DNA of 64,000 nt, taken from IMG/VR virus record IMGVR_UViG_3300027771_001853, positions 1 to 64,000 of that record. One strand, written 5' to 3'. Every line of letters starts with the position of its first letter. Position 1 is the first letter of the stretch. Under the pieces are notes generated by a model, which made no database searches, was not told the origin of the DNA, and saw only the letters and a list, made by a program, of their open reading frames with translations. This document shows positions 7,201 through 52,539 of the stretch, in pieces. Both the position numbers and the translations under genes were made by a program.

Positions 7201-10200
7201 AATGTTTTTAAAATTATTTATAGGGAACCCGTTTAAACTACCTAAATCCTTACCCATTCTTCTTTTATGTTTATCTTTAGGTTCGTCCCTGAATACTAAA
7301 TCGTTAAGTGATTCATTTAATTCTCCTCTTAAAAATCCTTTTCTTAGTATCCATTGGTCCGCACGGCCAGACTGGGGAAAGGTTTGTGGGGAACTATCTT
7401 TAGGAAAAATATACAGTGGTTTCGCACGTCCTCCACCTGCTAACATAGCACCTGTACGTTGTTCGTCGGTTATGCCCAGAGGTTCAATTTGGTAATAAGG
7501 GTTATCGTAATCAGGACGGTTATCTCTTCTGTTGGGGTCGGAAGCGTTATGATTATACTTAATCCCTACAACCACATAAGGTTTATATAATTCTGGTGCC
7601 CCGAAATCATGAATCCCTTCAGTAGAGACTACTATTATCTCATCACCAACCATTAAATCTGGATTTAAGTTAGATTCTTTATGTTCAGTAATAGCTTGTG
7701 GTGGTTCAGCATAAATCCATGTATCACCTTGGTATAAACGTTTAGGTGAACTATGAATGTTATAACCAGGTTTAAGTGGTTCTGCAGGTTCTAAATAATA
7801 ATATCTTCGGTAGTCTACGTGGAGTTCATTTGTATAGTGGCTATCAGCTATTTCAATTACTCTATAAACACCAAATCTTTCTGGTATACTTTCATCTCTG
7901 CCAATACTCCTATCTTCAACATCAATTACCCTTATAATGTCATCTACTTCTAACTCAGGATTTAATTTAGTTTCTTTATGTTCTTTGATGGTTTTACCCA
8001 CTTTAATCCATGTATCTTCTTGGTACATTCTTTTTATATGCCTCAGGTAGTCACACTTCATCAGCTCTTCACAGTTAACATCTAGTGGTACTAAATCATA
8101 TGTATCAGTACCATCACCATTTCCAGACCATTTTTCATTCATCACCTCCTCTACTTTATACTTTCCCCATTTGTCCGGCATCCATTCAGATGCCATACCA
8201 ATATCAATTACTCTTATAACATCACCTACCTCTAACTTAGGATTTAACTCTGGTTGATTATGTTCACTAAGTGTTAATCTATCCACACCGTTAGCTCTTG
8301 GGGTATTGGTGAGAATCCATTCGTATATCCAAGGGTATAATAGTTTTTCATAACCCTCATAATCTCCGTACCCACTGTCCAAACTTTCTTCATATTCATC
8401 TAATTTGTCTTCTGGAACTAATGTATACCTCCACCTCCACTTTGATTTATGTCCGTTAGATTCTTTATCTACAACAGTATATGGTGTATATTTTGCTGGT
8501 CTCATCTGTTCACTAGGGACATTATATGTTGTTGTGCCATTTTCCCTCTCTCTATCTACATCCACTATGAGTATAGTATCACCATATGTTAATTCAGGAC
8601 TTAACCCTGGTTGTTCGTCGGTTTGTTCGTCCATGTTTCTTCTATTGCCATCATAATATTTGCTTGATTCATTCCCAAGTCCTTCGTCGAATTTACCTGG
8701 TTCACTAAACACAATATGGTCTAAAGTTAAATCCACTGGTAGACCTATTAACACAGAACGTAAATCTTCTTCAATCTCTTCGTATACGTAATTAAGTTGC
8801 TCTTCATATCCATCTTCTCCTAATTCACTTATCTCCCATAAAGATATATCTTGGACGGTACCATCTGGAAAACTTACTGGTAATTCTGTATCCCCATTAA
8901 CTACCACATTCACACTTACATCACCGTTATTGTAGTTGAATATATCACTTACAATATATTCGTATTGCCATTGGTCTTGTAACCCTTCTAATCTATCTTT
9001 TACAATGTTACTTAATTCTTCGTCCCCATAATACTCTTTTAGGTTATCCCAAACCACAGACCTCTCCTCTAAGTTACCCATATTAATCCCCAATAACTTT
9101 AACTTATTCTTGTCTAGTGTTGGCCCCATCTTTCTCCAGAAGTTGAATAGTAGGTCTTGTGTTTTTTTAGGGTCGTTTTGTATAATTTTAGATATTTCCT
9201 CTTCATTTAGTGATGAACCTAATTCATTTAATTCATCATTACTTACTTGACTCAGTCTACCTTCATCGATACCGTACAATTTGAAATAATCATTAAAAAG
9301 TGTCTCGTTTATTTTAAATCTTAAAGCACTTCTATCTAATTCTGACGTTAACCACGCTATTTCACCATTATAAGTGTACTCTGGACTATCCCCTGCATCA
9401 GCAATATCTGTCCAAACTAAATCATAGTCAATTACTGTTATATTTTTCTTCCATAAACTTTTAGAGAATTCCCTCTCATATATGTAAGGGTTAACAATTG
9501 TGAATGTTATCTCCGTTCTAACAATATGTTCCCTACCTAATGTATTCCAGGTTGACCTGTCCATACCACTATCGACGTGTTTAAGACTACCCACATCTAA
9601 CATAACTGGTATTACGTGTGTTGTCCCATCCACAAAACTTGCAAGTCTTTTATGTTTGACCTCCTTACCGGAGAGTTGTGACTCTTGGTTTATAATCTTT
9701 TCTTTCCAATCTTGATTGTGATATGTACGAAACCTTCTAGACTCTTTTAACTCTTTTTCTTCTACCCCTTGTTTAATAGGTAAAGGTGGGTCCAATAAAA
9801 ACTTTTGGTTAAGGTAGTTTCTTAATAGGTTTTCTACGAACCAATCTGGAACTGGTCTACTATCTGGTTCATTCGATGCAACATCCGAGACATATCGGGC
9901 AAATTTAAGTTTATATTTATCCCTAATCATTTGTAAAAGACCATCAGAAATGAAGAATACTTTACCTAATGGGTCATCACCAATAGCGACATCTGGAATA
10001 TAATCTCCTTCTGCAATATCCATCGCCTTTAGTACAACTTTACCCCACCAGGATTTATAACCTTTAGTATCTTTAAGTGCTGGTGTGATTATCTTATTAA
10101 TTGCTCTAGTCGCGGTAACACCAACAGCCGCTAATAATATTTGTGGTATAAAAAATGGTACAATTCTCCAAATAGTTTTAAATAACCCTCTTCCCATATC

Positions 10201-13200
10201 ACCAGTAATTCGTTTCCTAGTTGCCTCCTCAACTAGTTCTCGTAACTGACCAAACGTTATAGGTCCTTGTGCTGAACAAAACCCTTTTACCTTACAAATA
10301 TTATCTGTTACTTCACTGGAAGGTGCTACATACCCTTTAATAGCGTCTGTTTTACCACCAGTATAAACATATTCTGATTCTGGATTGTTACGTTCTACGT
10401 CATCTTCAACATCACTAACTATTTTTTCCCATTCACTATCTTCACCCTCAAAGTCTTCAGGGTCACTTGGTTCTAACATTCCTTGACCAAACACATCCGA
10501 ATCTTCTTTCAAGATGGCAATTTTTTTCGTATTATCTATCTCCAATTCATGGTCGTCAGTATCACCCCACTCATAGGGTTCCATATCAACATCATAATCA
10601 TACCAATGGTTTTGGGCTGTATCTGTTGCATCCTGACTATTATAAGCATTTATTTCTATGGTCCCAGATTCCCATGTTTTTTGCCAATAAGAATTGGTTG
10701 CTTGTACTTCGTATTTTAATGGGTAAGTTTTAATAGCTGTACCAACTTCACTATAATCACAAGGAACATCCTCCGCAGCATAACACCCTTCATTCCAATT
10801 ATCTATTGCCCATTTAGCGAATCTTGTTGAACTAGCGTAGTAACCTCCATCATATTGAGTAGGTATACCAAAAAGTTTTATATTTTTAATCCACTCATCA
10901 TCTGGTATTTCCAAATTAGAAATAATATAATTCAATTTATCTTTAGTAAAAATTTTAGTGATGAAATTTAAAATTTTAACTTCGTTGTTGGTTAGTGGTT
11001 CGTATATAGAATAATCTTCAGACTCTTTATCATCCCCTTCATTATCTGGTGTAAGCCAATCACCTGTGTTAGCCTCTGTTAGTATCATAGGTTTTTCGTC
11101 CAACCATTTATCTATTCTTTCCATCAGTTTTAGAAACTCAACACCAGTTACTTCTGTGTCATAGCTTTCATAATCACCATAATCGGTAACCTCAGTCTCT
11201 CCTCCCCAATCCCAAAACTCATCATTTCCTTTATCTGTTGCGTCATTTTCGTCATACGCTAAAAGAGTGACCTCACCTCTTTTGTATTCTACTTGGGAAC
11301 CACTTTCATCCCTTGTAACTGTATACCATTTTAGTGGGGTTCTAATTGGTGCACTTATATCTTTATAGTCCCCGTCTTCTGTAGCTTTATCCCAGTTATC
11401 TAGTGCAAGTTTAGCGAACTGTGAATGTTTTGCGTTATCATCAAAATTATTTGCCTTAGTTATACCAAATAATTTTAAGTATTTAAAATATTTGTTTGCC
11501 GAACCATAATTATGTGGTGTTTCAGTGGTTAAATCTTGTAGTTCAGTTCTAGTAAAATTTCTGTAAAGCATTTTTAAAATACTAAGTTCAAAATTTGTAA
11601 AAGGGTGGGTTTCTGAATTGATTTGGTTTATTAGCTCCTCATCATGATGTTTATCGGCTGACCAATCCTCCTGTTCAACAATAGAATGACCACTTGCACC
11701 AGGTAACTTTTCGTGTTGGGATTGGGTTAATTTTTGTTCATCTGACAAGTCTGGTTCGTAAGTTAATTCAGTCAACCTATCACTTAGTGTTTCATTTATG
11801 TCATAGTCTGGCTGCCAATATCCGTCATACCATCGTGTATCTACTTGTAAACATTCACCTCTTTTTCCCTCACAATACTCACCCATCATAAATTCTTCTT
11901 CAACTAACATACCAAATAGTGCTGTTGCGTTGATTTCGTGGCTATGCATGTCGTTTATCATGATACTTTCTATGGTTTCTCCAATATAATCTGTGTGGTA
12001 TTCAAACACATCTTCAGTATTATCCCATTTATCATTTATCCAATCTCTAAGGTCACTATTAATAGTCCAGCTTATTCTACCGTTGTCATCTCGGTTTATT
12101 TTACCGTATTCCTGAAAATGTTCTGCTAATTTATCTTCAATATCATTACCCATCGCATTTAATGTAGCGTATGTTGATTCGTCATTGTTTGCCCACAATA
12201 TGTAGTGTTGGATATCGTCTATTTCTCCTTCGTATTTTTCTATTAGTTCTTCTTCCTCTTCGTTTTGTGGTTGTTCAGATAGTATGTGTTCTGCAACTTC
12301 CTGAGATACACCACCAAAAATACTACTAATAGTTTTCCAATTACTTTCATCAATTTGGTCTGTCATGTAAGTGTCCCACTCAAAATTAAACCAATCTTCC
12401 GTTTCGTTAAATTCGTCATCACCACATAAGTATTGTTTAATATACTCATCTTTTCCAATCTCTATCTCAAATAGATTTGATAGGTCATCACAATTAAGAG
12501 TATAAGATACTGGAATAGGGGTTTGACTAAATTGGATGTATCTTTTTAATAACATTGACATTAGTAAGTCTATACCCTCTGTTAAACCAAGCAGTTTTAA
12601 CACACCAACATCTACCCCTCTCTTATCCCATTGTCTAAAAATCACTTCAACCATATTGTCTGGTAGGGAATCCTCAACATGTTTAATTTCATCATCATCT
12701 AAATGACCTACAGGGTATTTAAATTCTCCTGTTGGCCACATTTTTATTTGCTTACTGTCTTGTTCCAACATTCTTTCACCTTCCCCATTAAATCTTTCCT
12801 TCTTTACACCTACTAAGCTTTTAAGAAAAATCCCTAGGTAATATACAGTATCACCTTCGTTTTCTTCTTCAAATTCTACAACTTCCCCCTGTTTATTATC
12901 AGGAAAGTGTTCCCAAATTTGTGCTTCATCTTCGTCTGTGTAGTCATCCGTTTGTTCATCAAATATAAGAAAATTACCATCTGTCCCCTCATCTAACATC
13001 ATCAATATATCATCATAATCGTGCGTAGTCGACATGTCAACATCAGGTATACATAAAACCTCAACATGATTATATGGGTAAAAATAAACCTCAGTAGTTA
13101 GAGTATAGTACTCAACACACTCACAATCATCGTCTTGGATGTTTAGATTTATCTCATTTTCATCACACTCAACCTCCACGATAGACCCATCAGGTCTTAC

Positions 13201-15066
13201 AACTTCTTTTTCTTGTCTTTTACAATCACACTCTTCACCACTAAGTTCACCATAACCATCTTCATCACAATCTTCATCCCGTGCAAAAGAGGTAAATTCT
13301 CCTTTATAAGTTATATAATACCTCATAAACTCATCCGGCACCACTAAATTATCTGGTGGACCATCATAACTTTGATTCAAATGGTTTAAAGTTAACCATA
13401 CTACTTGTGCTGATTCTTTTTGGCCTCTAGGAAAACTAAAATACTGAACTAGGACATCCCAGAAATTGGTGAATGTGTACTTTCCTCCACGTCTCCTTTC
13501 CATCATTTTATAGACTGTTTTTAGGATAGAGTGTAGTTTTGGGTGGGTGTATCCGTTGTATGATAAATCAGCTTCATTTAGGTTTCCCTTAGTTTTAGTT
13601 CTTTCTAACTCAAACTCATCATCTTCCCAGTCATTCTTTCTTTGTTCACCCTCGTCATTATAATCAGAAGCTCCTGTGTCTACTAATTTAATTACGTTTG
13701 GGTACGTAGGTTGTTTTAGATATTCGGTAACGGGAACTCCTGCACGTTCTAATTCTTTCATAAAATTATAAAGGGTGTAGTAATCTTGTTTTAAGGTCCC
13801 ATTAATCATTTCACCTCTTTCGTCTGGTGGAAACTCATCCATACATTTTCCCAGTCCAGATTCGTCAACACCATCCTCACCACAATAATGTTTAAACTCC
13901 TCAACTATATCTTCATATACATCAAATAACAATATTGCGTGTACCCAATCTAAGTTTGTATTATCTATTATCTCTAATCGGTCGTTGAGTGTTGGTAATC
14001 CAGCATCATCTATTACTCTTTTAGTGTCTTCCCATTCTTCCTCCTCTTTATTAAATTTGGTGATGGAATTACCTCTAAAGTCATAGTGATATGTGTCGGA
14101 CCAATCTACACTAGAATTTAAAAGTCCTAATTTCTTTCCATCATGAACTGCATCTGCAACAGTCTCCAAAGCATCCTCAAAGTTACCACCTGGTCTATTA
14201 AAACTTTCTACATATGCTGATGGGTGATAGGTGTTGTATAAGTTACTATATAACTGGTTACGGTATTTAGGCCATATAGACGTTAAGAACTTCTTAGTTA
14301 GTTCAGTTTCGGTTGACCCTTCAGTTATCTTTTGTTTTATGTCTTTAGTTTTTACCCATTTAACTTCACTTTCTACCAGGTTAAACGTTTTTGGGTGCAT
14401 GGTAACAGATTCTAGTAGGGTATCACTTTCGTTAACTGTGACTGGCATCCCACCATCCTCAAAACCAATAACTAATAAAGATTCATTTAATAAATCACTG
14501 TTAGATTCTAATTTAGTTTCTATTATTTTTACAGTATCACCAACATTAACTACGGGATTTACCACTTCGTTGGTTGGGCTTTCTTCTAGATATTTTAGGT
14601 AATTAGCCCAATTTAGTTCTGCCTTTGCTGAAGATACCTCATCTGGGTCTTTGTCATACCCACCTTTACGGTTTTCTTCTTTTTTATCTGGGTCTTGTAA
14701 GTGATGAGTGTATTCGTGTAATAAGGCTTTAATGATGTCTTCTTTATCTTTCATATTAGGGTAATATACGAATATCTTATTTTCATATACATCGTATTGT
14801 GCTTTTGACGTTTGACTTTCTTCTCCTTCCATCTCTGGAATACCACTTAATCTAGCATAGATATCCTTCCATAATTCAACTGTAGGTGTTCCATCCACAT
14901 ACATACTTTTACCTAAGTCGTTTACGATATGTGGGTACACTTTATCTATAATATCCTGTACAACGTATTGTTGGTCGATATCGTACTGTAATTCTGAGTC
15001 TAATATTTGTTTATTCATTACTTTTTTCTTATCTTTGTATTGTAGTTCAACATACAATAAATACAT
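4258..15066 (-). CDS. Giant 3602-aa modular protein (putative virion-cargo polyprotein) with two HExxH zincin-like domains, a PAP2/haloperoxidase-like domain and repeated modules
   Basis: Uninterrupted ORF; HEYTH and HELVH; KYHYNRPRP/PSGH/SRxxxxVHYPSD; four tandem LxPxLxxGD repeats. Confidence 0.85.
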   Translation of the reverse strand: MYLLYVELQYKDKKKVMNKQILDSELQYDIDQQYVVQDIIDKVYPHIVNDLGKSMYVDGTPTVELWKDIYARLSGIPEMEGEESQTSKAQYDVYENKIFVYYPNMKDKEDIIKALLHEYTHHLQDPDKKEENRKGGYDKDPDEVSSAKAELNWANYLKYLEESPTNEVVNPVVNVGDTVKIIETKLESNSDLLNESLLVIGFEDGGMPVTVNESDTLLESVTMHPKTFNLVESEVKWVKTKDIKQKITEGSTETELTKKFLTSIWPKYRNQLYSNLYNTYHPSAYVESFNRPGGNFEDALETVADAVHDGKKLGLLNSSVDWSDTYHYDFRGNSITKFNKEEEEWEDTKRVIDDAGLPTLNDRLEIIDNTNLDWVHAILLFDVYEDIVEEFKHYCGEDGVDESGLGKCMDEFPPDERGEMINGTLKQDYYTLYNFMKELERAGVPVTEYLKQPTYPNVIKLVDTGASDYNDEGEQRKNDWEDDEFELERTKTKGNLNEADLSYNGYTHPKLHSILKTVYKMMERRRGGKYTFTNFWDVLVQYFSFPRGQKESAQVVWLTLNHLNQSYDGPPDNLVVPDEFMRYYITYKGEFTSFARDEDCDEDGYGELSGEECDCKRQEKEVVRPDGSIVEVECDENEINLNIQDDDCECVEYYTLTTEVYFYPYNHVEVLCIPDVDMSTTHDYDDILMMLDEGTDGNFLIFDEQTDDYTDEDEAQIWEHFPDNKQGEVVEFEEENEGDTVYYLGIFLKSLVGVKKERFNGEGERMLEQDSKQIKMWPTGEFKYPVGHLDDDEIKHVEDSLPDNMVEVIFRQWDKRGVDVGVLKLLGLTEGIDLLMSMLLKRYIQFSQTPIPVSYTLNCDDLSNLFEIEIGKDEYIKQYLCGDDEFNETEDWFNFEWDTYMTDQIDESNWKTISSIFGGVSQEVAEHILSEQPQNEEEEELIEKYEGEIDDIQHYILWANNDESTYATLNAMGNDIEDKLAEHFQEYGKINRDDNGRISWTINSDLRDWINDKWDNTEDVFEYHTDYIGETIESIMINDMHSHEINATALFGMLVEEEFMMGEYCEGKRGECLQVDTRWYDGYWQPDYDINETLSDRLTELTYEPDLSDEQKLTQSQHEKLPGASGHSIVEQEDWSADKHHDEELINQINSETHPFTNFELSILKMLYRNFTRTELQDLTTETPHNYGSANKYFKYLKLFGITKANNFDDNAKHSQFAKLALDNWDKATEDGDYKDISAPIRTPLKWYTVTRDESGSQVEYKRGEVTLLAYDENDATDKGNDEFWDWGGETEVTDYGDYESYDTEVTGVEFLKLMERIDKWLDEKPMILTEANTGDWLTPDNEGDDKESEDYSIYEPLTNNEVKILNFITKIFTKDKLNYIISNLEIPDDEWIKNIKLFGIPTQYDGGYYASSTRFAKWAIDNWNEGCYAAEDVPCDYSEVGTAIKTYPLKYEVQATNSYWQKTWESGTIEINAYNSQDATDTAQNHWYDYDVDMEPYEWGDTDDHELEIDNTKKIAILKEDSDVFGQGMLEPSDPEDFEGEDSEWEKIVSDVEDDVERNNPESEYVYTGGKTDAIKGYVAPSSEVTDNICKVKGFCSAQGPITFGQLRELVEEATRKRITGDMGRGLFKTIWRIVPFFIPQILLAAVGVTATRAINKIITPALKDTKGYKSWWGKVVLKAMDIAEGDYIPDVAIGDDPLGKVFFISDGLLQMIRDKYKLKFARYVSDVASNEPDSRPVPDWFVENLLRNYLNQKFLLDPPLPIKQGVEEKELKESRRFRTYHNQDWKEKIINQESQLSGKEVKHKRLASFVDGTTHVIPVMLDVGSLKHVDSGMDRSTWNTLGREHIVRTEITFTIVNPYIYEREFSKSLWKKNITVIDYDLVWTDIADAGDSPEYTYNGEIAWLTSELDRSALRFKINETLFNDYFKLYGIDEGRLSQVSNDELNELGSSLNEEEISKIIQNDPKKTQDLLFNFWRKMGPTLDKNKLKLLGINMGNLEERSVVWDNLKEYYGDEELSNIVKDRLEGLQDQWQYEYIVSDIFNYNNGDVSVNVVVNGDTELPVSFPDGTVQDISLWEISELGEDGYEEQLNYVYEEIEEDLRSVLIGLPVDLTLDHIVFSEPGKFDEGLGNESSKYYDGNRRNMDEQTDEQPGLSPELTYGDTILIVDVDRERENGTTTYNVPSEQMRPAKYTPYTVVDKESNGHKSKWRWRYTLVPEDKLDEYEESLDSGYGDYEGYEKLLYPWIYEWILTNTPRANGVDRLTLSEHNQPELNPKLEVGDVIRVIDIGMASEWMPDKWGKYKVEEVMNEKWSGNGDGTDTYDLVPLDVNCEELMKCDYLRHIKRMYQEDTWIKVGKTIKEHKETKLNPELEVDDIIRVIDVEDRSIGRDESIPERFGVYRVIEIADSHYTNELHVDYRRYYYLEPAEPLKPGYNIHSSPKRLYQGDTWIYAEPPQAITEHKESNLNPDLMVGDEIIVVSTEGIHDFGAPELYKPYVVVGIKYNHNASDPNRRDNRPDYDNPYYQIEPLGITDEQRTGAMLAGGGRAKPLYIFPKDSSPQTFPQSGRADQWILRKGFLRGELNESLNDLVFRDEPKDKHKRRMGKDLGSLNGFPINNFKNIPPPQNESDTTEEELDYLDTIKVDSELVESADNVDKHFKIFLNSKQLEYPTNEIKEVMNGVRAIVLKLKYHYNRPRPWQIANAKGLTLDSETLQSASTPSYPSGHATQGRFIGRYLSDLYPEYGNELKQIGEDIAYSRNMAKVHYPSDSAFGKLLGDELYDYVYQTQEELELSESQIDIIDTTHPYSEARYNDFVDFVKNELGIKNSPPIKVEVEPTSEYTTGYYNNKKEIVKVRGYQRQLADILRSIAHELVHHKQKEDGLIDKPHPEIGGPIEDEANSLAGRLVKSYGKLFPEIYSQLQEQYDKPEDKKNIDLTTQLFDALDNSFGIYPHPEGELDYDGGKMQLYSYDHEGFVPIEVLYQTIPGMVERGVPQEEADLMVNILTDWVNSRMTFKEPQLNEQIENKNIKVRTMFDNGKVKVVVPLNKESFCSLISESVCGGLGDHFIKKLLNTGTIYITEEQEGYRRKTHIMHHQGKVPFLRDKPFYSFYEKLGNSLKYLEKVEFKRYLSDKPELAKFFNVEFDEREKIKFNMIRTSEDIKGFMNSTNNTTSNSDKSSNDTFLKSIYGIMVNEEKRGVTNQEDIYDTLEDFTGEDTTISYDNEPNPYGYSSSLDQIHITDNGVEIRMDKNRYVEDVLLLTDDDLYFYEVGRDTNTYDHPYEDVEETEVDYTAVHWSKDTLANWNKVMELTGNEEYIQQNSRDAGEGDILDPMKRIGGGDVTEVLNDIISALGYGIGAHRASEMSKHISDELLFEDDFYMDKTIVKLSWLQLLWIIKMFGVTNFSEMLKEPWNEIESNLSDIYYDGYGYEDDVGEEINTLMNNWLLHELEDEDSLRRGKNNNIKFMEILKRLGFKRRNGQAREPDFGLEDVLSGGNVFFVDKVGKNQINIMDYDGKTDDTLIKISMQISDEPVGKEDDDVDRPDPKFTEVETDSSVKQWTVNRRIKTDDLETYVNADNSELKEMIPPDKWYQGVGRYGLEYL
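7320..8635 (-). repeat. Four tandem ~95-125-aa SH3/KOW-like modules inside the giant ORF
   Basis: LSPELTYGDTILIVDV, LNPKLEVGDVIRVIDI, LNPELEVDDIIRVIDV, LNPDLMVGDEIIVVST, each followed by P-x-x-[YWF]-x-x-Y-x-V. Confidence 0.75.
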
Positions 15067-38887: not shown

Positions 38888-39358
38888 TTAATCTAAAGGG
38901 CCATACTTTTCACTAGCCATTGCATCACCAAAGTCTTTAGACCCCGGTAATTCAAAAGAAATATAGTAAGGGTGTTTATCATAATCTTTTGTGGTGGTTC
39001 CATAATAAGAATCAATAGAATATGATATTATGTCACCTCTTCGTGTAAGAGACAAGATTATTTCTTTTATCTTGTCCTTCCAATTACTCTGTTTAGTTGG
39101 GTCAAAAGTTGTGTCATCTGGATTATGCATTTGTAAATCTGTAGGGACCTTAATGGACTCAATTGTGTTTGGTAGTTTATCCACAAAATCTAACATCTCT
39201 TTATAGTCATTTGTTTTAAAGACATATGGGTTAGTTCTAAATTCTTCAACCTCACCTCTTCTATGGTAAGTCCCAGGAAATCCCTTTGATGATACCCTAT
39301 GGTGTTGGACAGGGTTCTTGTATTCTTCTTTTAATATATTTCTAATTAGTTTTTTCAT
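38888..39358 (-). CDS. Hypothetical phage protein with ILKE leader
   Basis: MKKLIRNILKEE. Confidence 0.7.
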   Translation of the reverse strand: MKKLIRNILKEEYKNPVQHHRVSSKGFPGTYHRRGEVEEFRTNPYVFKTNDYKEMLDFVDKLPNTIESIKVPTDLQMHNPDDTTFDPTKQSNWKDKIKEIILSLTRRGDIISYSIDSYYGTTTKDYDKHPYYISFELPGSKDFGDAMASEKYGPLD

Positions 39359-42300
39359 TGTTTAATTACTTTATGGTTAATTATCATACCTCTAAAGGTA
39401 ATTCTTAAATCGTATATTCCAGCTGGTAAGTTAATCATATCTATTTCTTTAGCTTTTTCTTTATATATAAGATGATTCCCAAACATATCATAAACGTTAA
39501 CATCTATATCTTCTTTTGTTTTAATATTTATTTTATCTCTAGTAGGATTTGGGTAAACCACTACTTTATTTCTACCCATATCCTCCAAACCTAAAGGGCT
39601 TCCAAAGGTACAATAATCATATTGTGACTGACAAAAAGCGTCCCATTGATTATTAAGACAGTACGGGTCTACCTCATAAACTACCCAAGCGTAACACGTA
39701 TCATTTAACCAGTAAGGTAATCCAACACCCGTTACTGTATTCACATCGTAATATAAACATGAACCATCATCAGTGTTAGCGTTCTGGTCGTAGTTATTTA
39801 CTGTCACAGTACTAAATCCTGGTATATAATTAGTATATGTACTATATAGATACCCTTGGAAGTCATATCCGTCCGTACACCCTAAGACTGTCGCTATGCA
39901 AGTCCCATTATCTGTATTAACTAATGGGTCGTAGTTGAATGCTGTTGAATCCATACACCCATACATAAATGGGATACACGGGTTAGTTATGTCTGTCTCA
40001 CTTACTTGATTTGTGTTAGCTGAAACGTCGTAGTTAAACATTGTGTTATCCATACACCCATACATAAACGGGACACAACTCCCATTATCTGTATTAGCTA
40101 ATGGGTCATAGTTAAACATCAATGAGTCCGTACAACCATATGTAAATGGTACACAACTCCCATTATCCACATTAACCGTTGGGTTATAGTTAAACATTGT
40201 GTTGTCCATACACCCATAAACAACCAAATTTAAACAACTTCCGTTATCAAAATCCGCTGTAAATCCTTGATTATAAAATTCTAGATATAAAGGGTCAGTA
40301 CAACCTGGGTTATAATAACAACTATTATCGTTTGTATTAGATAGTGGGTTCCAGTTAGAAGCTGTCACATCAGTACACCCATAAATGTAAGCTACACATG
40401 AACCATTATCTGTATTAACTAATGGGTTATAGTTAAACATTGTGGAATCAGTACAACCATAAATGTAAGCTACACAACTAAAGTCATCTGTATTAGCACT
40501 AGGATTAAAATTTAGTGCTGTAGGGTCAGTACAACCCTCTATAACTGAAACACAGGTACCGTTATCCGCATTGGCTACAGGGTCGTAGTTGAACGCGGAG
40601 GTATCAGTACAACCATAAATAAAAGTTATACAAGAACCATTATCCGTGTTTGCTGTTGGGTTATAATTAAACATTGTGTTGTCTGTACAACCATTAATAA
40701 ATGGTACACAGGAACCATCATTCACATTTGCATTAACATTAAAGTTAAACATTGTTGGGTCCGTACACCCTAGGAAAGGATAAACACAACCACTATTAGT
40801 GTTAGCTAAACTATCGTAATTTAAAGCTGTCTGGTCTGTACACCCAATCACCACTGGCATACACGAACCATCGTCAGTATTTGCATTTACATTGAAATTA
40901 AAAGCGGTTGGGTTTGTACAACCTAGGATTGGGTAGATACACCCACTATTAGTGTTAGCTAAAGAGTCGTAATTCATTGCCGTTATATCAGTACAACCAA
41001 TAACAACAGAGACACAAGTACCGTCATCTGTATTTGCGTTTACATCATAGTTAAAGGCTATTGGGTCTGTACACCCTAATATTGGGTAAACACAACCTGA
41101 ATTTGTATTTGCTGTGGAATCAAAATTAAGAGCAGTCGGGTCCGTACATCCAATAACAACAGAAACACAACTATTATCATTAGTATTTGCACTAACATTG
41201 AAATTAAAGGCTGTCTGGTCTGTACAACCTAATATTACTGGTACACACGAACCATTGTTTGTGTTTGCTGGTGGGTCATAATTAAATGCGAGAATATCTG
41301 TACAACCAAATACGATTGGGTAACAAGAACCATCCTCGGTATTGGCAGCTGCATTATAATTAAACATTGTATCATCCATACACCCTAATATTACTGGAAT
41401 ACATGATGATGGGTCGTTTGTGTTTGCTGAAGGGTTAAAGTTGAATGCCGTTGAGTCCATACATCCAATTATGGTAGCTACACAATTACCATCGTCAACA
41501 TTTGCTAATGGGTCGTAATTGAAGGCTAGTGTATTTGTACACCCTAATACTATTGTAATACAATTACCATCTGGCATATTGGCTAACGAATTATAATTTA
41601 ATGCGGTTACATCCATACAACCAAGTATTCCTGGTGTACAGTAATTACCACATTGTGGAATTGAGTTGTATTTGTAAGGGAATTGTATCATTGGGTCTGT
41701 CCAAGAATTAGTCCCTCCTGATAATGTAGTGTCACCTTCAGGTCCTATTAAATAAAACCCACATTGATTTGCTGTTGTCTCAGAATTACCTTGAGTAAAG
41801 AACATTATATCTACTGGACTGGATGAACTTAGGTTAATTGTATATGAATTACTTGCCCCGTCAGAAGGTCCCATTGTATATGGTCCTAATATTGTTGTAC
41901 CTTGTAATACACCCAACCAACTTCCAAACCAACCATCTTGTGCACCATCAGTTATTACTAATGTATAATCACAATTTGGGACTAGGGACATTGTGTTCGC
42001 TGATGAGTCATAGTCTGGTGATGTTATATCTGTACAACCTAATACTACTGGTGTTAAACAAGAACCGTCATCTGTGTTTGCTTGTGGGTTATATTCTGTA
42101 AATCCTGGAGTTGTACAACCTGGAATTGAATTTGGTGTACAAGGTTGGACGGTGTATGTCACACTTGTATCCATCCCAAAGTCTGCATTACCTGGTAGTA
42201 TGGCCATTATAGTGTCCCCACATAACGTTTGAACTAGTACTGTTCCGTCAACCCCACCATAACAAGTTCCACACATACCATCACCAAAACCATCATATAA

Positions 42301-43320
42301 GTTAAAATTAATTACTGTTCCATTTGGTACACATGTCTCTGTAATTATAGGAACTCCTGTTATTGAGTAGCTTGGGGAACTTACTAATACTATTCCATTA
42401 GTGTCTGTTATTTCCCATGAAGTTTCTCCTGGGTACGTATCTGGTATTACTGTTACAACTATATTTGATTCCCCATTTATACAATTAGCTGGTGGAGCTT
42501 GACATGAACCGTCAGGGGTATTAGCCCAAGGGTTGTAGTTTAATGCGGTAGGGTCTGTACAACCAAGAATACATTCTCCAGTTGTAATAACTAAAGTATC
42601 TGTATAACTTGAGTCAGCTAGCATACCTAAAAAATAATATGTAGTGTTTGGTTGTTGGTTAGAATACATCAACCCTGTATTTGAAAAGTTTCCGGGATAA
42701 GGATACCAATTGTTTCCTAAATCATATGGGTTATCTGATTTCGTATATGAGGCCATTCTACAACTCAGGTTTGCCATGTTTGACCAATGGTAATAAACCA
42801 CATTCCCAGCAACGTTACAATAAGTTTCTACCCAAAAAGTGTCTAAACCATTACATGGAGGATACACACATGAACCATCATCAAAATCGGATAATGAATC
42901 GTAGTTTAATGCTAACGTATCTAAACAACCCCCAACTGGTGGAGCACATGGTGCAATAATTAATGTTTGTGTATATAAAGCACCGAAATCATCTTCAATA
43001 AAAGCTAGAGTATCTGCACAACTAGTATCTGTTACTGTAATACTACCTCCTGGGCAGCAATATCCGTCGCTAAAAGCATCGTATACATTTAAAGTATAAG
43101 TACCGTTAACTACAGAGTCAATGAATATAGTTGTATCTGCTTGACCAAACCAATAGTCACCAGGTAATGCAAATGCTAAAGTGTCTCCGTATGCGTCTAA
43201 AATTTCCCAAGAAGTTTCTTGAGCGTAGTTGTCGAATTTAAAATCAACCTTTATTTGTGTTTGTGTGAACCCTAAAAAAGGTATCAGTAATGTTGTTATA
43301 TATAGAAAAATGTTTCTCAT
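39355..43320 (-). CDS. Large Cys-rich repeat protein with T9SS type A sorting domain
   Basis: Signal peptide; about 27 GCxDxxAxNYxxxANTDDGSC repeats; C-terminal VYPNPTRD..YDMFG..LPAGIY..KVIKQ. Confidence 0.88.
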   Translation of the reverse strand: MRNIFLYITTLLIPFLGFTQTQIKVDFKFDNYAQETSWEILDAYGDTLAFALPGDYWFGQADTTIFIDSVVNGTYTLNVYDAFSDGYCCPGGSITVTDTSCADTLAFIEDDFGALYTQTLIIAPCAPPVGGCLDTLALNYDSLSDFDDGSCVYPPCNGLDTFWVETYCNVAGNVVYYHWSNMANLSCRMASYTKSDNPYDLGNNWYPYPGNFSNTGLMYSNQQPNTTYYFLGMLADSSYTDTLVITTGECILGCTDPTALNYNPWANTPDGSCQAPPANCINGESNIVVTVIPDTYPGETSWEITDTNGIVLVSSPSYSITGVPIITETCVPNGTVINFNLYDGFGDGMCGTCYGGVDGTVLVQTLCGDTIMAILPGNADFGMDTSVTYTVQPCTPNSIPGCTTPGFTEYNPQANTDDGSCLTPVVLGCTDITSPDYDSSANTMSLVPNCDYTLVITDGAQDGWFGSWLGVLQGTTILGPYTMGPSDGASNSYTINLSSSSPVDIMFFTQGNSETTANQCGFYLIGPEGDTTLSGGTNSWTDPMIQFPYKYNSIPQCGNYCTPGILGCMDVTALNYNSLANMPDGNCITIVLGCTNTLAFNYDPLANVDDGNCVATIIGCMDSTAFNFNPSANTNDPSSCIPVILGCMDDTMFNYNAAANTEDGSCYPIVFGCTDILAFNYDPPANTNNGSCVPVILGCTDQTAFNFNVSANTNDNSCVSVVIGCTDPTALNFDSTANTNSGCVYPILGCTDPIAFNYDVNANTDDGTCVSVVIGCTDITAMNYDSLANTNSGCIYPILGCTNPTAFNFNVNANTDDGSCMPVVIGCTDQTALNYDSLANTNSGCVYPFLGCTDPTMFNFNVNANVNDGSCVPFINGCTDNTMFNYNPTANTDNGSCITFIYGCTDTSAFNYDPVANADNGTCVSVIEGCTDPTALNFNPSANTDDFSCVAYIYGCTDSTMFNYNPLVNTDNGSCVAYIYGCTDVTASNWNPLSNTNDNSCYYNPGCTDPLYLEFYNQGFTADFDNGSCLNLVVYGCMDNTMFNYNPTVNVDNGSCVPFTYGCTDSLMFNYDPLANTDNGSCVPFMYGCMDNTMFNYDVSANTNQVSETDITNPCIPFMYGCMDSTAFNYDPLVNTDNGTCIATVLGCTDGYDFQGYLYSTYTNYIPGFSTVTVNNYDQNANTDDGSCLYYDVNTVTGVGLPYWLNDTCYAWVVYEVDPYCLNNQWDAFCQSQYDYCTFGSPLGLEDMGRNKVVVYPNPTRDKINIKTKEDIDVNVYDMFGNHLIYKEKAKEIDMINLPAGIYDLRITFRGMIINHKVIKQ
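39757..41622 (-). repeat. About 23 tandem ~75-81-bp coding repeats
   Basis: GC[TM]D...N[YF]...[AV]N[TV]xxGxC units counted in the translation. Confidence 0.85.
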
Positions 43321-47052: not shown

Positions 47053-47511
47053 TTATATAAATTCTGGGGTTTCTCTTTTCTTCCAGGAATGTAAATGTGA
47101 TTTATCTTTAACATAATAAAGTCGATACGATTCAACATGGTCATCGCTTTTATACTCCTCTGGCATCGCTAGGGTTGGTTGTGTGAATTTACCATCTGGT
47201 ATGTTAGGGGTATTATTAGTTAACCACTCTATGTGTTGTTGTGTTTTATGTGTTTTCCCATACCGATGGGTATACTCTTTACATAATCCCATACCTAACT
47301 CACATAACCAAGTGTAGTTTGACTTATTACTTCTAGCCCAAACTGCTGATGGGTGGTTTTTATGTGTTTCTCTGTAAGGTCCTTCACCACCTGACACCCA
47401 GTGAGTGGTAGAAAGTAACTGTGCTGTCTCTAAAATCATTTTAACCACATGTTTGTCCACATGATACTTTGAACAGGTCTCGGGGTCTTTATGTAAGTAG
47501 AATATATTCAC
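47053..47511 (-). CDS. Pyrimidine-dimer DNA glycosylase (DenV)-related protein
   Basis: MNIF..DKHVVKMILETAQLL..THKNHPSAVW..EY..RYGKTH..YRLYY; GTG start. Confidence 0.75.
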   Translation of the reverse strand: MNIFYLHKDPETCSKYHVDKHVVKMILETAQLLSTTHWVSGGEGPYRETHKNHPSAVWARSNKSNYTWLCELGMGLCKEYTHRYGKTHKTQQHIEWLTNNTPNIPDGKFTQPTLAMPEEYKSDDHVESYRLYYVKDKSHLHSWKKRETPEFI

Positions 47512-48099: not shown

Positions 48100-48237
48100 T
48101 TTGTTTCTTTTTTAGTTATTTATGTCTTTTAATTATATAATATATATATCTATTTGTCCAGTTTTATCACGAATAAAGAATATACTTAAACACATATAGT
48201 TTAGTACAATATCACTATATTATACACAATTACATAT

Positions 48238-48262
48238 AAAAAAACCCCACCGAAGTGGGGTT
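48238..48262 (-). terminator. Intrinsic terminator (C-UUCG-G loop)
   Basis: CCCCAC-TTCG-GTGGGG followed by T7 on the minus strand. Confidence 0.85.
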
Positions 48263-48266
48263 AATC

Positions 48267-48321
48267 TCAGGAAGGGGTTTCAATTTAATTTATTTAATTG
48301 TTAGATTGCGGTAATCTTCCT
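48267..48321 (-). ncRNA. Putative small RNA, copy 2 of the DUF2828-associated motif
   Basis: AGGAAG-ATTACCGCAA-(AU-rich)-CTTCCT-GA. Confidence 0.5.
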
Positions 48322-48363
48322 TTCATATATAAATCGCCTAGGGCGAAGTAAAGTACAATCTTC

Positions 48364-48482
48364 TGGGTAGTCAGAATCATTTTTTTATTCCTAGTTTATT
48401 TTATCGTCAAGGTGGGGAATAATATCCACCTCTCTCTCTTGGTTTTGTTTTTAGTTGCCGAAGAGATTCTTTGGTCTACCCA
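48364..48482 (-). ncRNA. Putative small RNA, copy 1 of the DUF2828-associated motif
   Basis: TGGGTAG..AGAATC-TCTTCGGCAA-(A-rich, GGTGG/CCACC hairpin)-GATTCT-GA-CTACCCA. Confidence 0.55.
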
Positions 48483-49916
48483 TTAGACCTTAATAGATTC
48501 ATATCGAGCGGACCCGATAGTCTCCATCATCATATTATAAGGTGTCATATCCTGACAACTTAATATACTTTTCATGATTGAGGGTGAGAATCCTGACACT
48601 AACGCTGTTCCCATCTCGTCGAAACTAGTTGGTACGTTGTCTTGTCTACTTTGGATATTCCAATAAACAATCCCTGGCATTTTGTAACCAGCTTCCTCAT
48701 ACATCCCTTTAATCATTTCTTGTGCAGTTGGGTTCCAGTCTGTTACTTTGTCATAGTTATCACTGATTGCTTCATCAAACTCCATATCCGAAAGGATAAG
48801 AACTTTGGTCGGCATCTCTGATACTGAAACATCGTGTTTTACTGCTTGGTCTAAGATTAACTTAAACGTTGCTTGTAAATCAGTACTCATTCCCCAGTCT
48901 GCTCTCTCCAGTTGAGTTAACCTTTCGGCTAACGAACCTTCGAGTAATTGTAGTTGTGGTCTCGAAGAAAATGTTATGAATGCGTTTTTGAAGACACCTT
49001 CATTTCTCTCTGAGATGTACAAACCCAATGATGTTGAAACATCCATACAAGTAACGTTACCGTTATTTCCAGCGGAATTTCCCATCGAACCTGATACATC
49101 AACTACAGGTAACACTCTTTCACTAATACCTTCCATGTAATTTGGAAGAGACTCCCATTGTGCTTGTGCAACATCCCTTTCCCCACCAAATTTGATGGAT
49201 TTAGTTATGTCATAAGGGTATACAGCTCCAGCGTTGATTGTAGTTTTACCTTCAACTAAAGCTCTTTTGTACTCCTCATACCTCTCTTCGTCATTCTTCA
49301 TGAAAGTTTTTTGATACCTTGACGAGGCTAAGGATGGAAGTTTCGAATAATCGATACTTTTCCAATCCTTTGCACACATCTTGGTTTCAACCACATCGGT
49401 AAGTCCTACTAATAACTTACGGTATTGTTTTGGGGACATTCTAAGGTACCTACGAATAATATTCGCTTTCATACCTTTTCTTGGCATCCATTTAGCACAT
49501 AAACCATCTTCGTTATCCAAAGCAGTTTTTACTAAATTAAGTGCCGAGTCCCAACAGTTCTGAGTTCCAACCAACGTTAAAACATCATCCCATCTACCGT
49601 ATTCACTAATTAAGTGAATGTTTTTATGTAAAACTTCTCTGTGGTTGTCACATAACCATAATAGACAATCTCTGAAGATTTGTCTCTCACCAGCTCCACC
49701 ACGGACATCACGTGCCCAAAAAATAATCCTAATTGTTGTGAGAGGGTCTTCATTAAAAGCTTTCGAAACCTTGGCGTGAAGTCTGTCTTTGCTCGCACCA
49801 CGCATCGCTCCTACTTGAAAAAATAGGTCAACACAATGTTTGAGCGAGGATGAGTTTGTGGTCATCCCTTTCTCAGTCGTTGTGTCTTTTTGTTGTATGG
49901 CGTCGATTAAATTCAT
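48483..49916 (-). CDS. DUF2828-family TROVE/Ro60-like protein with vWA domain
   Basis: ARDVRGGAGER, YGRWDD, AKWMPR, VVDVSGSM (MIDAS), ILSDMEFD, VYWN, SGFS. Confidence 0.85.
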   Translation of the reverse strand: MNLIDAIQQKDTTTEKGMTTNSSSLKHCVDLFFQVGAMRGASKDRLHAKVSKAFNEDPLTTIRIIFWARDVRGGAGERQIFRDCLLWLCDNHREVLHKNIHLISEYGRWDDVLTLVGTQNCWDSALNLVKTALDNEDGLCAKWMPRKGMKANIIRRYLRMSPKQYRKLLVGLTDVVETKMCAKDWKSIDYSKLPSLASSRYQKTFMKNDEERYEEYKRALVEGKTTINAGAVYPYDITKSIKFGGERDVAQAQWESLPNYMEGISERVLPVVDVSGSMGNSAGNNGNVTCMDVSTSLGLYISERNEGVFKNAFITFSSRPQLQLLEGSLAERLTQLERADWGMSTDLQATFKLILDQAVKHDVSVSEMPTKVLILSDMEFDEAISDNYDKVTDWNPTAQEMIKGMYEEAGYKMPGIVYWNIQSRQDNVPTSFDEMGTALVSGFSPSIMKSILSCQDMTPYNMMMETIGSARYESIKV

Positions 49917-49979: not shown

Positions 49980-50007
49980 ATTATAATAAAAAAATTGGTT
50001 GTGTCAA
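49980..50007 (-). promoter_or_regulatory. Possible sigma70-like promoter TTGACA-N16-TATAAT
   Basis: Exact hexamers upstream of the DUF2828 gene; AT-rich background lowers significance. Confidence 0.35.
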
Positions 50008-50371: not shown

Positions 50372-50716
50372 ATGGAACTTATTATAAACAAAAATAACTA
50401 CCCTTTGGAGTTGATGTTGACCGAACCCCAAATAAGAAAGGGTATGATGGGTAGAAATAAACTAGATGGTGGAATGTTGTTTGTGTTTGATAACGTTTCT
50501 CCTAGAGCTTTCTGGATGAAAGACTGTAAGATACCTTTAGATATAATATACCTAACTAATGGTAAGGTAAATAAAATCTACAATTCATGTTTACCATGTA
50601 AAAGGTTAAAGTGTAAGAACTATCCTGGTGTTGGGGATTCGGTACTTGAATTAAACGGTGGTACAGTTAAAAGAGAAAATATCCAAAAAGGTGATTTATT
50701 AAGATTTAAGTCTTAA
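50372..50716 (+). CDS. DUF192 family protein
   Basis: GMMGR..GMLFVF..FWMK..IPLDIIY..VLELNGG. Confidence 0.88.
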   Translation: MELIINKNNYPLELMLTEPQIRKGMMGRNKLDGGMLFVFDNVSPRAFWMKDCKIPLDIIYLTNGKVNKIYNSCLPCKRLKCKNYPGVGDSVLELNGGTVKRENIQKGDLLRFKS

Positions 50717-51115
50717 TTATTCCCTAGTCTTAATATACTCTAGAATGGTTGTTGCCATTTGTTCATCAAAAAACTCTGGGTCTAATTCAGCAACTATTTC
50801 ACTTGTAGTGTCATCACTTTCTAACTCACCAGTTTCGAGATATATCACGTACTTAGGTGGGCCAAAAACAGTTTCATATTCTAAAACTAACTGACCACCT
50901 TTATATGGTAAATTTTTAATCACACTATTTTCTTCTTCTGGTTCGACATGTTGTGGGTCACCAGGTTCAGCGTATTTTTGTTGTGTTTTTTTAAAAGAAT
51001 CGTCATAGAAATAATCAGGATTACCACCTGGAGTATCATTTCTAGAGTCTTCTTTAATAATTTTTTTAACCAAGTTTTGTATGTGTTGTGGGGATATGTT
51101 TACCTTTCTTTTCAT
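50717..51115 (-). CDS. Hypothetical phage protein with IIKE leader
   Basis: NLVKKIIKED. Confidence 0.65.
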   Translation of the reverse strand: MKRKVNISPQHIQNLVKKIIKEDSRNDTPGGNPDYFYDDSFKKTQQKYAEPGDPQHVEPEEENSVIKNLPYKGGQLVLEYETVFGPPKYVIYLETGELESDDTTSEIVAELDPEFFDEQMATTILEYIKTRE

Positions 51116-52539
51116 TATTGGGTTAGTTTTTTAAGTTTTTCTACCATAGCGTTTTGAATCCATTTCACCATTTTAACATATTTTGTTTGTTGTCCAGATT
51201 TCTTTTTGTATGGTTTGTCAAAATTTCTTGTCGCTCTACTAAAAAAGTTTAACCCACTTATGTTAGTTATACATTTATGCCCTCCACTATTAGACTGTAT
51301 AACATCCCATATAGAAACTGTTATTCTATCCAGATAACTTTTTTCGGTCTCAGTTAAATTTGCCCAAGGTGTATCCACCATTTTAATTGTATTTCCATAC
51401 TCTGGGGAATCTTCAGGTGGCATATTTTGTAAATGGTCCTTATATAAAGCAAATAAATCAGACGATTTAAAACCAATACTTTCTTCTTCAGCTTTAGTTT
51501 CACCTATACGTTTTATAACAGAAATGGGTACTTGGTGTCTTTGTAGTCCTGGTTTAATGGTCTCCAACACTTCTTGAGCTACATCTGCTAAGTTCACACC
51601 TTTAATAGCTCTATCTTCTTTAAACGGATTACATGACGCTTGTACTAGACCCATAGGCCAAGCTATAACTAGAAAATCAGCGTCAGGGTATAATTTAAAT
51701 GGTGTGTACCTATCGTAAGACCCTGGTTTAAACATACTACCTCCACCGTATTGAGATATGATACCATCTTCGTAAGTTACATTAGCGTTTTTACTTTGTG
51801 CGTCCACATAACTTTCTTGGTTTTTTTGCATGTCTTCTGGTGTAGCAAATCCCCTTTCTTTTGCTATCCTCCTAATGTTATTATAGATGTTTAACAGAGA
51901 AGGTTCTGATGTCATAACTAACTCTTCTAGAAACCCTGGTTTATTTTTATAAGCTAATAACAATTTATTTGTTAATAGTGCTAACATTTGTTTATTCTTA
52001 GGTACACCACCTTCTTTATCCAAGTCGTACAAATAATTCATAACCTCTTCAGGTTTAATCCCATACTTCGCATAATCAGCACTATCCATGGTAGAAATCA
52101 TCCTAATATCATCATTAGGGAATATATCTTGTGGGCTTACTATTTGAGATACTGTCTCAACGTTTGACCTTGCTCCTCTAAATTGGGTTGACGTATCATC
52201 TTCTACCCCAGTTTGGCTATCGTGATGGTCAGTATGTATAATCATCTGTGGTTTACCGTGAGCAAAATCCACCAATACTGGCATAACATCACCCCTAGCT
52301 TTATCTATTAGTGGTTTTTGTACTGAAAATTCCTTATCACCATATTGGATTACATGACTACCTATAACTTTTATCCCGTAAGATTCCAAATAATTCTTCA
52401 TCGCTAAAGCAGTTGTAACCCCATCCGTATCTTGGTGGAAGTATATTTCCGCTTTAGGGTATCTTTGAGCTAACGCGGTAATATTACGTATTCCGCTTTC
52501 TTTTAATAAGATTTGTGAGAGTGTATTAACTAATTCCAT
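51115..52539 (-). CDS. DHH-family phosphoesterase
   Basis: FHQDTDG, LVDF, TDHH, GGHK motifs; ILLKE leader. Confidence 0.75.
   Translation of the reverse strand: MELVNTLSQILLKESGIRNITALAQRYPKAEIYFHQDTDGVTTALAMKNYLESYGIKVIGSHVIQYGDKEFSVQKPLIDKARGDVMPVLVDFAHGKPQMIIHTDHHDSQTGVEDDTSTQFRGARSNVETVSQIVSPQDIFPNDDIRMISTMDSADYAKYGIKPEEVMNYLYDLDKEGGVPKNKQMLALLTNKLLLAYKNKPGFLEELVMTSEPSLLNIYNNIRRIAKERGFATPEDMQKNQESYVDAQSKNANVTYEDGIISQYGGGSMFKPGSYDRYTPFKLYPDADFLVIAWPMGLVQASCNPFKEDRAIKGVNLADVAQEVLETIKPGLQRHQVPISVIKRIGETKAEEESIGFKSSDLFALYKDHLQNMPPEDSPEYGNTIKMVDTPWANLTETEKSYLDRITVSIWDVIQSNSGGHKCITNISGLNFFSRATRNFDKPYKKKSGQQTKYVKMVKWIQNAMVEKLKKLTQ

Follow-up and report, generated by a model that had tools for sequence, protein, structure and literature searches.

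The analyzed DNA is a stretch of 64,000 nucleotides (nt), i.e., positions 1 to 64,000 of the IMG/VR virus record IMGVR_UViG_3300027771_001853 (below, the whole stretch is referred to as the window), whose minus strand carries a gene for a Ro60-like protein of the DUF2828/DUF7788 type (48483..49916; 477 amino acids (aa)) and, downstream of it, two copies of a structured RNA element. This locus probably encodes a ribonucleoprotein of the Ro60/Y RNA type, whose RNA component would carry a recognition motif of its own, (U)UACAGCAA. The window is identical to part of a 297-kilobase (kb) IMG/VR viral contig and carries tail-fibre and endolysin genes; it was therefore ascribed to a jumbo phage from a marine metagenome.

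A first-pass annotation of this DNA had placed two elements on the minus strand, between the stop codon of the DUF2828 gene and a UUCG terminator. Both were found there, and the stems and the 10-nt motif described in that annotation can be read directly in the sequence. The stop codon (TAA) lies at 48485-48483, and copy 1, a long-form RNA of 119 nt (48364..48482), begins at 48482, directly 3' of it. Its outer stem is formed by TGGGTAG (48482-48476) and CTACCCA (48370-48364) and, behind an internal loop (ACCAA / GA), its inner stem by AGAATC (48470-48465) and GATTCT (48378-48373), the latter arm being followed by GA. The motif TCTTCGGCAA occupies positions 48464-48455, and a hairpin, AGGTGG/CCACCT, is located at 48410-48431. 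In copy 2, a short-form RNA of about 55 nt (48267..48321), AGGAAG (48321-48316) pairs with CTTCCT (48274-48269), again with GA behind it, the motif ATTACCGCAA is found at 48315-48306, the loop is A-rich, and the 3' tail reads UGA.

For the comparative analysis, 149 related loci were taken from viral contigs and from contigs of bacterial and archaeal genomes. A scan for the grammar shared by the elements (a stem beginning with G, NUWCAGCAA, a variable loop, and a complementary arm ending with C, followed by UG) detected them beside most of the homologous genes, down to 32% protein identity, and the stem sequences turned out to be diverse (GGTTCC, GGATAG, GAATGA, GATAAG, GGGACT, GGCTGA, and others). 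In the seed alignment A3, composed of 52 short copies, each localized downstream of its gene, positions G3, T10, C12, G14, C15, A16, A17, and the closing C are invariant, double changes occur in six of the seven stem pairs, and the two pairs that had not been imposed by the way the copies were chosen are formed in 49 and in 48 of the 52 copies. A covariance model (CM) built from A3 and named R1 gave 143 matches across the loci at E ≤ 1, of which 142 are on the strand of the gene; the matches lie close to it, upstream or downstream, and often form arrays. In distant loci from genomes and metagenome-assembled genomes (MAGs), which were absent from the seed, R1 revealed that 2-5 copies are arrayed directly upstream of the gene (L130, L139, L107, L113, and L118), e.g., four upstream copies in a row in L130, and four upstream plus two downstream copies in L139.

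The covariation claimed in the first-pass annotation was borne out by an independent set of 35 matches (A4), in which 98.8% of cells are paired and compensatory changes occur at all seven pairs; this alignment was fitted to R1, which favours pairing, but the E-values are mainly driven by the motif, and the stems are different from those of the seed. When the partners are slid, the pairing falls to about 45% or less. The closing G-C pair is present in 33/35 sequences and the 3' tails are mostly CUGUA or CUGUU, the window copies ending with CUGA. A strict grammar scan gave 89 matches in 127 kb of sense-strand flanks and none in the antisense flanks, the controls yielding two matches in 374 kb of coding sequence and one in 2.5 megabases of shuffled flanks. 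When only non-redundant loci were counted, the flanks of DUF2828 homologues contained a sense match within 520 nt in 55 of the 73 viral and 31 of the 55 genome loci (antisense, 0). The idea that the gene is accompanied by a small-RNA class of its own is thus upheld, over about 150 loci, by the conservation of the elements, their covariation, and their specificity for strand and position, and, judged by sequence comparison, the RNA family is real and widespread. Copies are often spaced by 4-5 nt or start right after the stop codon, and such tight packing indicates co-transcription and processing, as in arrays of transfer RNA (tRNA) genes.

Among cultured phages, three RNAs are present in Listeria phage A511 (upstream of gp178), in Salmonella phage Mushroom (amid tRNA genes downstream of the homologue), and in Staphylococcus S-CoN_Ph3 (in tandem after the homologue), and single ones in Campylobacter CP81, Mycobacterium phage Crossroads, and Bacillus PK-3. 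The cultured-phage records examined do not annotate these elements as RNA. It is worth mentioning that CDS0028 and CDS0029 of S-CoN_Ph3 (L155:3007-3354) and ORF140 of CP81 (L154:1331-1468), all described as 'hypothetical protein', overlap R1 matches; these small open reading frames (ORFs) are probably mis-annotations.

Applied to the whole window (both strands, filters off), R1 placed copy 2 at the top (48266-48322, 44.8 bits, E 1e-9) and copy 1 second (48370-48471, 16.1 bits, E 0.07, its 40-nt insert being penalised), and no credible match besides these two was found on either strand of the 64 kb. The terminal stem of copy 2 is present in its minimum-free-energy fold. For copy 1, RNAalifold applied to eight related loci predicted the outer stem, the inner stem, and the hairpin. 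Compensatory changes were also observed in the long form, i.e., TGAGTAG/CTACTCA in L023, and TAAGTA/TACTTA together with GGAATC/GATTCC in L019. An alternative helix, UCUCUU/AAGAGA, chosen by the single-sequence fold of copy 1, is 76% paired, which equals shuffled sequences, and is devoid of covariation; the inner stem AGAATC/GATTCT was retained over it. A kink-turn reading of the ACCAA/GA loop was also rejected, as the bulged strand has AA where G-A is needed. In locus L019 (2935-3250; IMG/VR contig 3300024520_000047), whose protein is 71% identical, GCAC replaces the GCAA of all other loci in both the long and the short RNA and the stems carry compensatory changes as well, which may reflect a co-variation of the protein with the RNA motif.

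Many loci carry two forms of the RNA, i.e., a short form of about 50-65 nt, with NUWCAGCAA, and a long form, which has the same stem and motif (often as CUGCAA or CGGCAA) together with an insert of 100-250 nt and, in the clade of the window, an extra outer stem. In L017, the long form was lost and only a remnant of the outer stem was kept. The long form of L094 includes T and D arms and matches the YrlA model (RF02553; 42.6 bits, E 5e-8), with YrlA scores of 42.6-47.1 against a gathering score of 69, and its CAGCAA aligns at the cggCGAAUG position of that model. With a strict pattern, a T-loop was found in 6/59 long forms, and ARAGORN indicated no tRNAs in the window. As a separate observation, two oversized tRNA genes, a tRNA-Ser (121 nt) and a tRNA-OTHER (113 nt), are annotated downstream of the homologue in Cronobacter phage S13 (L160:3390-3632). 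Both have acceptor, D, and T arms and an insert of about 45 nt with a hairpin followed by GUAUUCAGCA; ARAGORN predicted no tRNA at these two sites, and they may represent a permuted joining of the motif to a tRNA-like body. Similarly, a 110-nt 'tRNA-Pseudo' of Synechococcus phage B3 (L156:3369-3478) adjoins an R1 match.

The 477-aa protein, recognized by ORF prediction and by Pfam, PHROG, and fold matches, is composed of an N-terminal part matching PF11443 DUF2828 (1e-38), built of helical repeats, and a C-terminal, vWA-like part matching PF25043 DUF7788 (5e-51), which holds the MIDAS motif DVSGSM. The MIDAS residues (DxSxS...T...D; D273, S275, S277, T345, and D377) are invariant in an alignment of 21 family members, and PHROG 850, 'RNA-binding protein', was assigned to the window protein (E 7e-152). 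An AlphaFold model was obtained from the 21-sequence alignment (mean pLDDT 74), and Foldseek matched it over its full length to Ro60 of Thermus phage phiLo (9kop/9l5y; E 7e-9, TM 0.57), as well as to Xenopus and human Ro60 and Deinococcus radiodurans Rsr (2i91, 1yvp, and 2nvo). In a fold search of Swiss-Prot models, the top matches included Ro60 models, Tetrahymena telomerase p80, and TEP1. The last two are likewise RNA-binding ring modules, which serve telomerase or vault RNA, but they are large eukaryotic multidomain proteins whose RNAs are unrelated to the phage ones. The model supports for the window protein the architecture of Ro60/TROVE, i.e., a ring of helical (HEAT-like) repeats joined to a vWA domain, and the initial description of the protein as TROVE/Ro60-like agrees with these matches. 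The Ro-like nature is further supported by existing annotation, which recognizes it in part: mycobacteriophage members are already labelled 'Ro-like RNA binding protein'. A search with a hidden Markov model (HMM) estimated the family at 8604 representatives at 50% identity, and homologues occur in 710 cultured phage records, including Felixounavirus, KVP40, nt-1, Listeria A511, cyanophage B3, GAP32, and phiM12, and phages of Staphylococcus, Campylobacter, Bacillus, and Enterococcus.

The known Ro60 systems offer several parallels. Y RNA genes adjoin Ro60 genes, and within the stem of the Y RNA it is chiefly the 5' strand that Ro60 binds (PMC4201824); Ro60 of Thermus phage phiLo binds two adjacent Yrl RNAs (Yrl1/Yrl2) and, with them, the host PNPase (PMC12135203). 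The phage protein analyzed here is likewise predicted to have a ring-plus-vWA fold, the RNA genes stand beside the protein gene and are often of two kinds, long and short, the 5' and 3' ends of the RNAs form a terminal stem and a conserved motif is found on the 5' strand, as in Y RNA and YrlA, and a tRNA-like module, as in YrlA, is present in at least one long form (L094). The differences are that the protein belongs to DUF2828/DUF7788 and not to Pfam TROVE, that the short forms have only about 55 nt, and that the Rfam YrlA model has no match in the window and matches L094 below the gathering score. The comparison with Y RNAs made in the first-pass annotation can be refined in that at least one relative (L094) has a YrlA-like long form. 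Neither in the window nor in 20 loci did any Rfam 15 family (4227 families) reach its gathering score, and full-text literature searches turned up no publication that connects DUF2828 with an RNA; no name for the RNA family thus exists in Rfam 15 or in the literature that could be searched, which agrees with the suspicion that the class was undescribed.

A tentative mechanism can be drawn from this analogy. The protein would be a Ro60 paralogue, with a helical-repeat ring and a vWA/MIDAS domain, and the two downstream elements would be its partner small RNAs. In each RNA, the closing stem joins the ends, the conserved G pairing with the C of the 3' C-UG(A/U) tail, and (U)UACAGCAA (in the long form, CGGCAA or CUGCAA) is single-stranded and situated directly 3' of the 5' arm. 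The protein may recognize the stem and the motif, as Ro60 does with the 5'-strand GGUCCGA of Y RNAs, and the variable loop or the module inserted in the long form might gate the ring or tether an effector during infection, possible effectors being an exoribonuclease, RNA-repair enzymes, or tRNA enzymes. What the analysis shows is the RNA family with its structure, the strict linkage of this family to the gene, and the Ro60-like fold; RNA binding by the protein, RNA processing, and function are inferred.

In the window, the long form would make up the 3'-terminal part of the mRNA, from which it is probably excised, and the short form would sit between a weak and a strong terminator. A small G+C-rich hairpin, TCGCCCTAGGCGA, followed by TTTATATAT (48334..48346, minus strand; terminator-like scan), stands between the two forms and looks like a terminator; a hairpin of different sequence is found at the equivalent place in L015, L016, L005, L017, L021, and L023. 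Behind the short form, an intrinsic terminator with an 8-bp stem and a UUCG loop (48262-48243) followed by a T run (48236..48262, minus strand) was recognized by scan and fold. The ORF listing shows no ORF of ≥40 aa in the spacer 3' of the DUF2828 gene, and the promoter scan revealed no promoter of the short form's own; a TATA-rich stretch about 7 nt upstream of the short form is conserved solely within the clade of the window. The gene itself is preceded, about 64 nt upstream of its start codon, by a sigma-70-type promoter-like site with a 12/12 match to the consensus (TTGACA-16-TATAAT; 49980..50007, minus strand), whose function is putative.

The surroundings of homologous genes are consistent with a role in RNA surveillance or repair during infection, because of tRNA arrays, RNA ligase, RtcB, and transfer-messenger RNA (tmRNA) neighbors, and the precedent of phiLo Ro60 and PNPase. 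Genes of tRNA are present on the same strand within 1.5 kb in 12/60 loci, and in L107 and L113 the gene lies inside tRNA arrays; an RNA ligase gene is located directly upstream of the homologue in GAP32, and RtcB and phosphohydrolase genes just downstream of that in A511. Separately, tmRNA genes were noticed just downstream of the RNA arrays in L090:3140-3582 and L125:4033-4437, and a RAGATH-27 RNA at the Rfam gathering score upstream of the homologue in a contig of a Blautia MAG (L129:749-831). In the Felixounavirus locus L151:3040-4354, the annotation assigns the tRNA genes and the homologue to opposite strands; according to ARAGORN and the interspersed R1 matches, they are on the same strand.

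As regards expression, marine metatranscriptome contigs from relatives of about 92% identity extend from the gene across the long form and, in one run, reach the short form. One metatranscriptome contig of a relative (run X2) ends with adapter at 48370, just after GAUUCUGA. The same position is the last base of the R1 match on copy 1, and this contig end may mark the 3' end of the RNA, although it is suggestive only.

The short form also resembles the Class I RNAs of Dictyostelium, which are reportedly treated in Aspegren 2004, Avesson 2011, and Kjellin 2021. Their family, RF01414, is the sole Rfam family repeatedly matching the short form, with 21.5 bits in the window (copy 2) and 27.5-30.7 bits in L029, L053, L057, L125, and L041, and each of these matches coincides exactly with an R1 match (E 0.09-0.5, corrected for 4227 families). 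All these scores are under the Rfam gathering score of 41.5, and those of the five loci exceed the CM cut-off of 25 used in PMC7919456. In the same paper, Class I RNAs are defined by a 6-bp end-joining stem, in which an invariant 5' G pairs with the C of a 3' CUGU, an 11-nt motif, CCUUACAGCAA, by the 5' arm (T3, C6, C9, A10, and A11 being invariant), a length of about 60 nt, a variable loop, and clustered genes (PMC7919456). The phage RNAs similarly have a 6-7-bp end-joining stem with a 5' G paired with the C of a 3' CUG(U/A) tail, a length of about 55-60 nt, a variable A-rich loop, and gene clusters. The sequence following the 5' arm in Dictyostelium, CCUUACAGCAA, is identical in several phage copies, and C6, C9, A10, and A11 are invariant in the phage family too; read as G-ATTACCGCAA, copy 2 agrees at all five Class I invariant positions, and copy 1 at four of them. 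This likeness is seen directly in DdR-21 and other Class I sequences from the supplement of PMC7919456. With a grammar so close to that of the Class I RNAs, the shape of the phage RNAs is not without precedent.

On the other side, the phage motif is one base nearer to the 5' G (a register one base shorter), the invariant T3 of Dictyostelium varies in the phage family, in which T4 and G8 are invariant instead, and the eukaryotic DUSE promoter element (about 60 nt upstream) is unexpected in a phage. As the family is currently defined, i.e., by DUSE and occurrence in Dictyostelia, the phage RNAs are not members of Class I. An nhmmer profile made from the phage seed ranked six Dictyostelium RNAs, in register, among the top 11 of 1806 (3.5-8 bits, too weak alone). 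Similarity beyond the motif was considered and attributed to chance: a 15-mer, GCAATCTTAACAATT, is common to DdR-59 and L016, and loop-only alignments gave p 0.04-0.2 (uncorrected). The outgroup search reported for Class I RNAs covered one bacterium and no phages (PMC7919456). We regard the likeness, which would stem from homology or else from convergence toward a similar way of binding, as a strong lead and not as demonstrated membership.

More tentatively, the Class I RNAs and the phage and prokaryotic RNAs might constitute one family of partners of DUF2828-type Ro-like proteins, the Class I RNAs being analogues of Y RNAs whose missing core partner is a DUF2828/TROVE-like protein of Dictyostelium; we ourselves find this more doubtful than probable. 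A pull-down with DdR-21 recovered GuaB, NdkC, the RNA recognition motif (RRM) protein CIBP/Rnp1A, which is a direct binder, and DDB_G0281243, of unknown function (10.1101/2020.04.05.026054), and the last one would be the candidate core partner. The supplements of PMC7919456 do not mention DDB_G0281243. When a Dictyostelium DUF2828 protein was sought by fold, the Swiss-Prot models, AlphaFold DB clusters, and ESM Atlas either yielded no entry from this genus or came without organism names, and the best 150 matches, to which the listing of the HMM search extends, were all of phage-like length.

Several other explanations of the locus were considered. The elements are always on the strand of the gene and close to it, upstream or downstream, the window long form begins at the stop codon, and the metatranscriptome contigs connect the gene with the RNA region, all of which would also suit sites acting in cis, i.e., operators in the 5' or 3' untranslated regions of the DUF2828 mRNA to which the protein or some other factor would bind in order to autoregulate or stabilize it, and not free RNAs. 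We consider this unlikely, given that the Felixounavirus copies are scattered among tRNA genes at 340-1000 nt downstream, that head-to-tail copies 4-5 nt apart resemble tRNA arrays, that the window short form stands between two terminator-like hairpins, and that one long form has a tRNA-like module, like free YrlA RNAs. It is slightly less credible still that these are real small RNAs with other partners, e.g., RNAs that soak up nucleases or RNA-binding proteins of the host as decoys or sponges, linked to DUF2828 by co-regulation only. In favor of such partners, the RNAs of similar build in Dictyostelium have the RRM protein Rnp1A as a direct binder (PMC7919456), but the linkage spans phages of Proteobacteria, Firmicutes, Actinobacteria, and Cyanobacteria as well as archaeal MAGs, and persists to 32% protein identity while the neighbor genes change, which is a pattern typical of direct partnership, as for Ro60 and Y RNA.

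An accumulation of degenerate tRNA-derived or mobile repeats near the gene by chance would find some footing in the tRNA genes within 1.5 kb in part of the loci (12/60) and in the tRNA-like arms on one long form. The window, however, contains no tRNAs, no terminal repeats, and no further copies in its 64 kb, and the stems vary in sequence yet stay paired, and such an origin appears very improbable. To the idea that the A+T-rich spacer holds hairpins formed by chance or remains of terminators we give practically no credence: folded on its own, copy 2 surpasses shuffled sequences by a modest margin (z -2.0), but the conservation data refute this explanation and every comparative statistic opposes it.

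We therefore return to a Ro60/Y-RNA-type ribonucleoprotein as the best explanation, against which some observations nevertheless weigh. The Pfam TROVE model (PF05731) does not match the protein, a scan at E ≤ 0.1 giving DUF7788, DUF2828, and a weak VWA_2, and because of this failure the protein represents, by sequence, a sister family of TROVE and not a Ro60 orthologue; in a profile search of PDB sequences, TROVE chains appeared only at E 0.066, across the MIDAS stretch. The GGUCCGA / CGAA of Y RNAs is absent, the phage motif being (U)UACAGCAA or CGGCAA. A tRNA-like module was sought in the window long form and rejected, with no YrlA match at E ≤ 10 (48100-48600) and no T-loop. The evidence for expression is weak, as the contigs of the ~92%-identical relatives provide neither transcript ends nor abundance and may include DNA. 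Finally, the sole direct binder shown for Class I RNAs is the RRM protein Rnp1A, which is not Ro-like (PMC7919456).

With these results, a very large protein family (8604 representatives, 710 phage records) gains a candidate for a conserved RNA partner with a defined motif, and the Ro60/Y-RNA principle would then hold for a second protein family, whose RNA code differs. Unannotated RNA genes are indicated in records of model phages, including Listeria A511, Felixounavirus, Campylobacter, Staphylococcus, and mycobacteriophages. It should be stressed that the mechanism of Class I RNAs has been open since 2004 and that these RNAs are currently described as unique to social amoebae; the likeness described above is the first lead from outside the Dictyostelia on their origin and core partner. 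If the one-family idea were true, their range would span phages, bacteria, archaea, and amoebae, and they would not be an innovation tied to dictyostelid multicellularity.

Other features of the window include two large ORFs, one of 3602 aa (4258-15066, minus strand) and one of 1321 aa (39355-43320), neither of which has a PHROG match. The neighbors of the locus, among them a weak DHH-like gene, a lysozyme gene, and a denV-like glycosylase gene, say little. The last of these, a pyrimidine-dimer glycosylase-like gene, is located at 47053-47511 on the minus strand; the first, at 51115-52539 on the same strand, encodes a 474-aa protein with a weak N-terminal match to the DHH family (E 4e-4, under the Pfam cut-off). 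Between the latter and the DUF2828 gene, a DUF192 gene (50372-50716) is present on the opposite (plus) strand.

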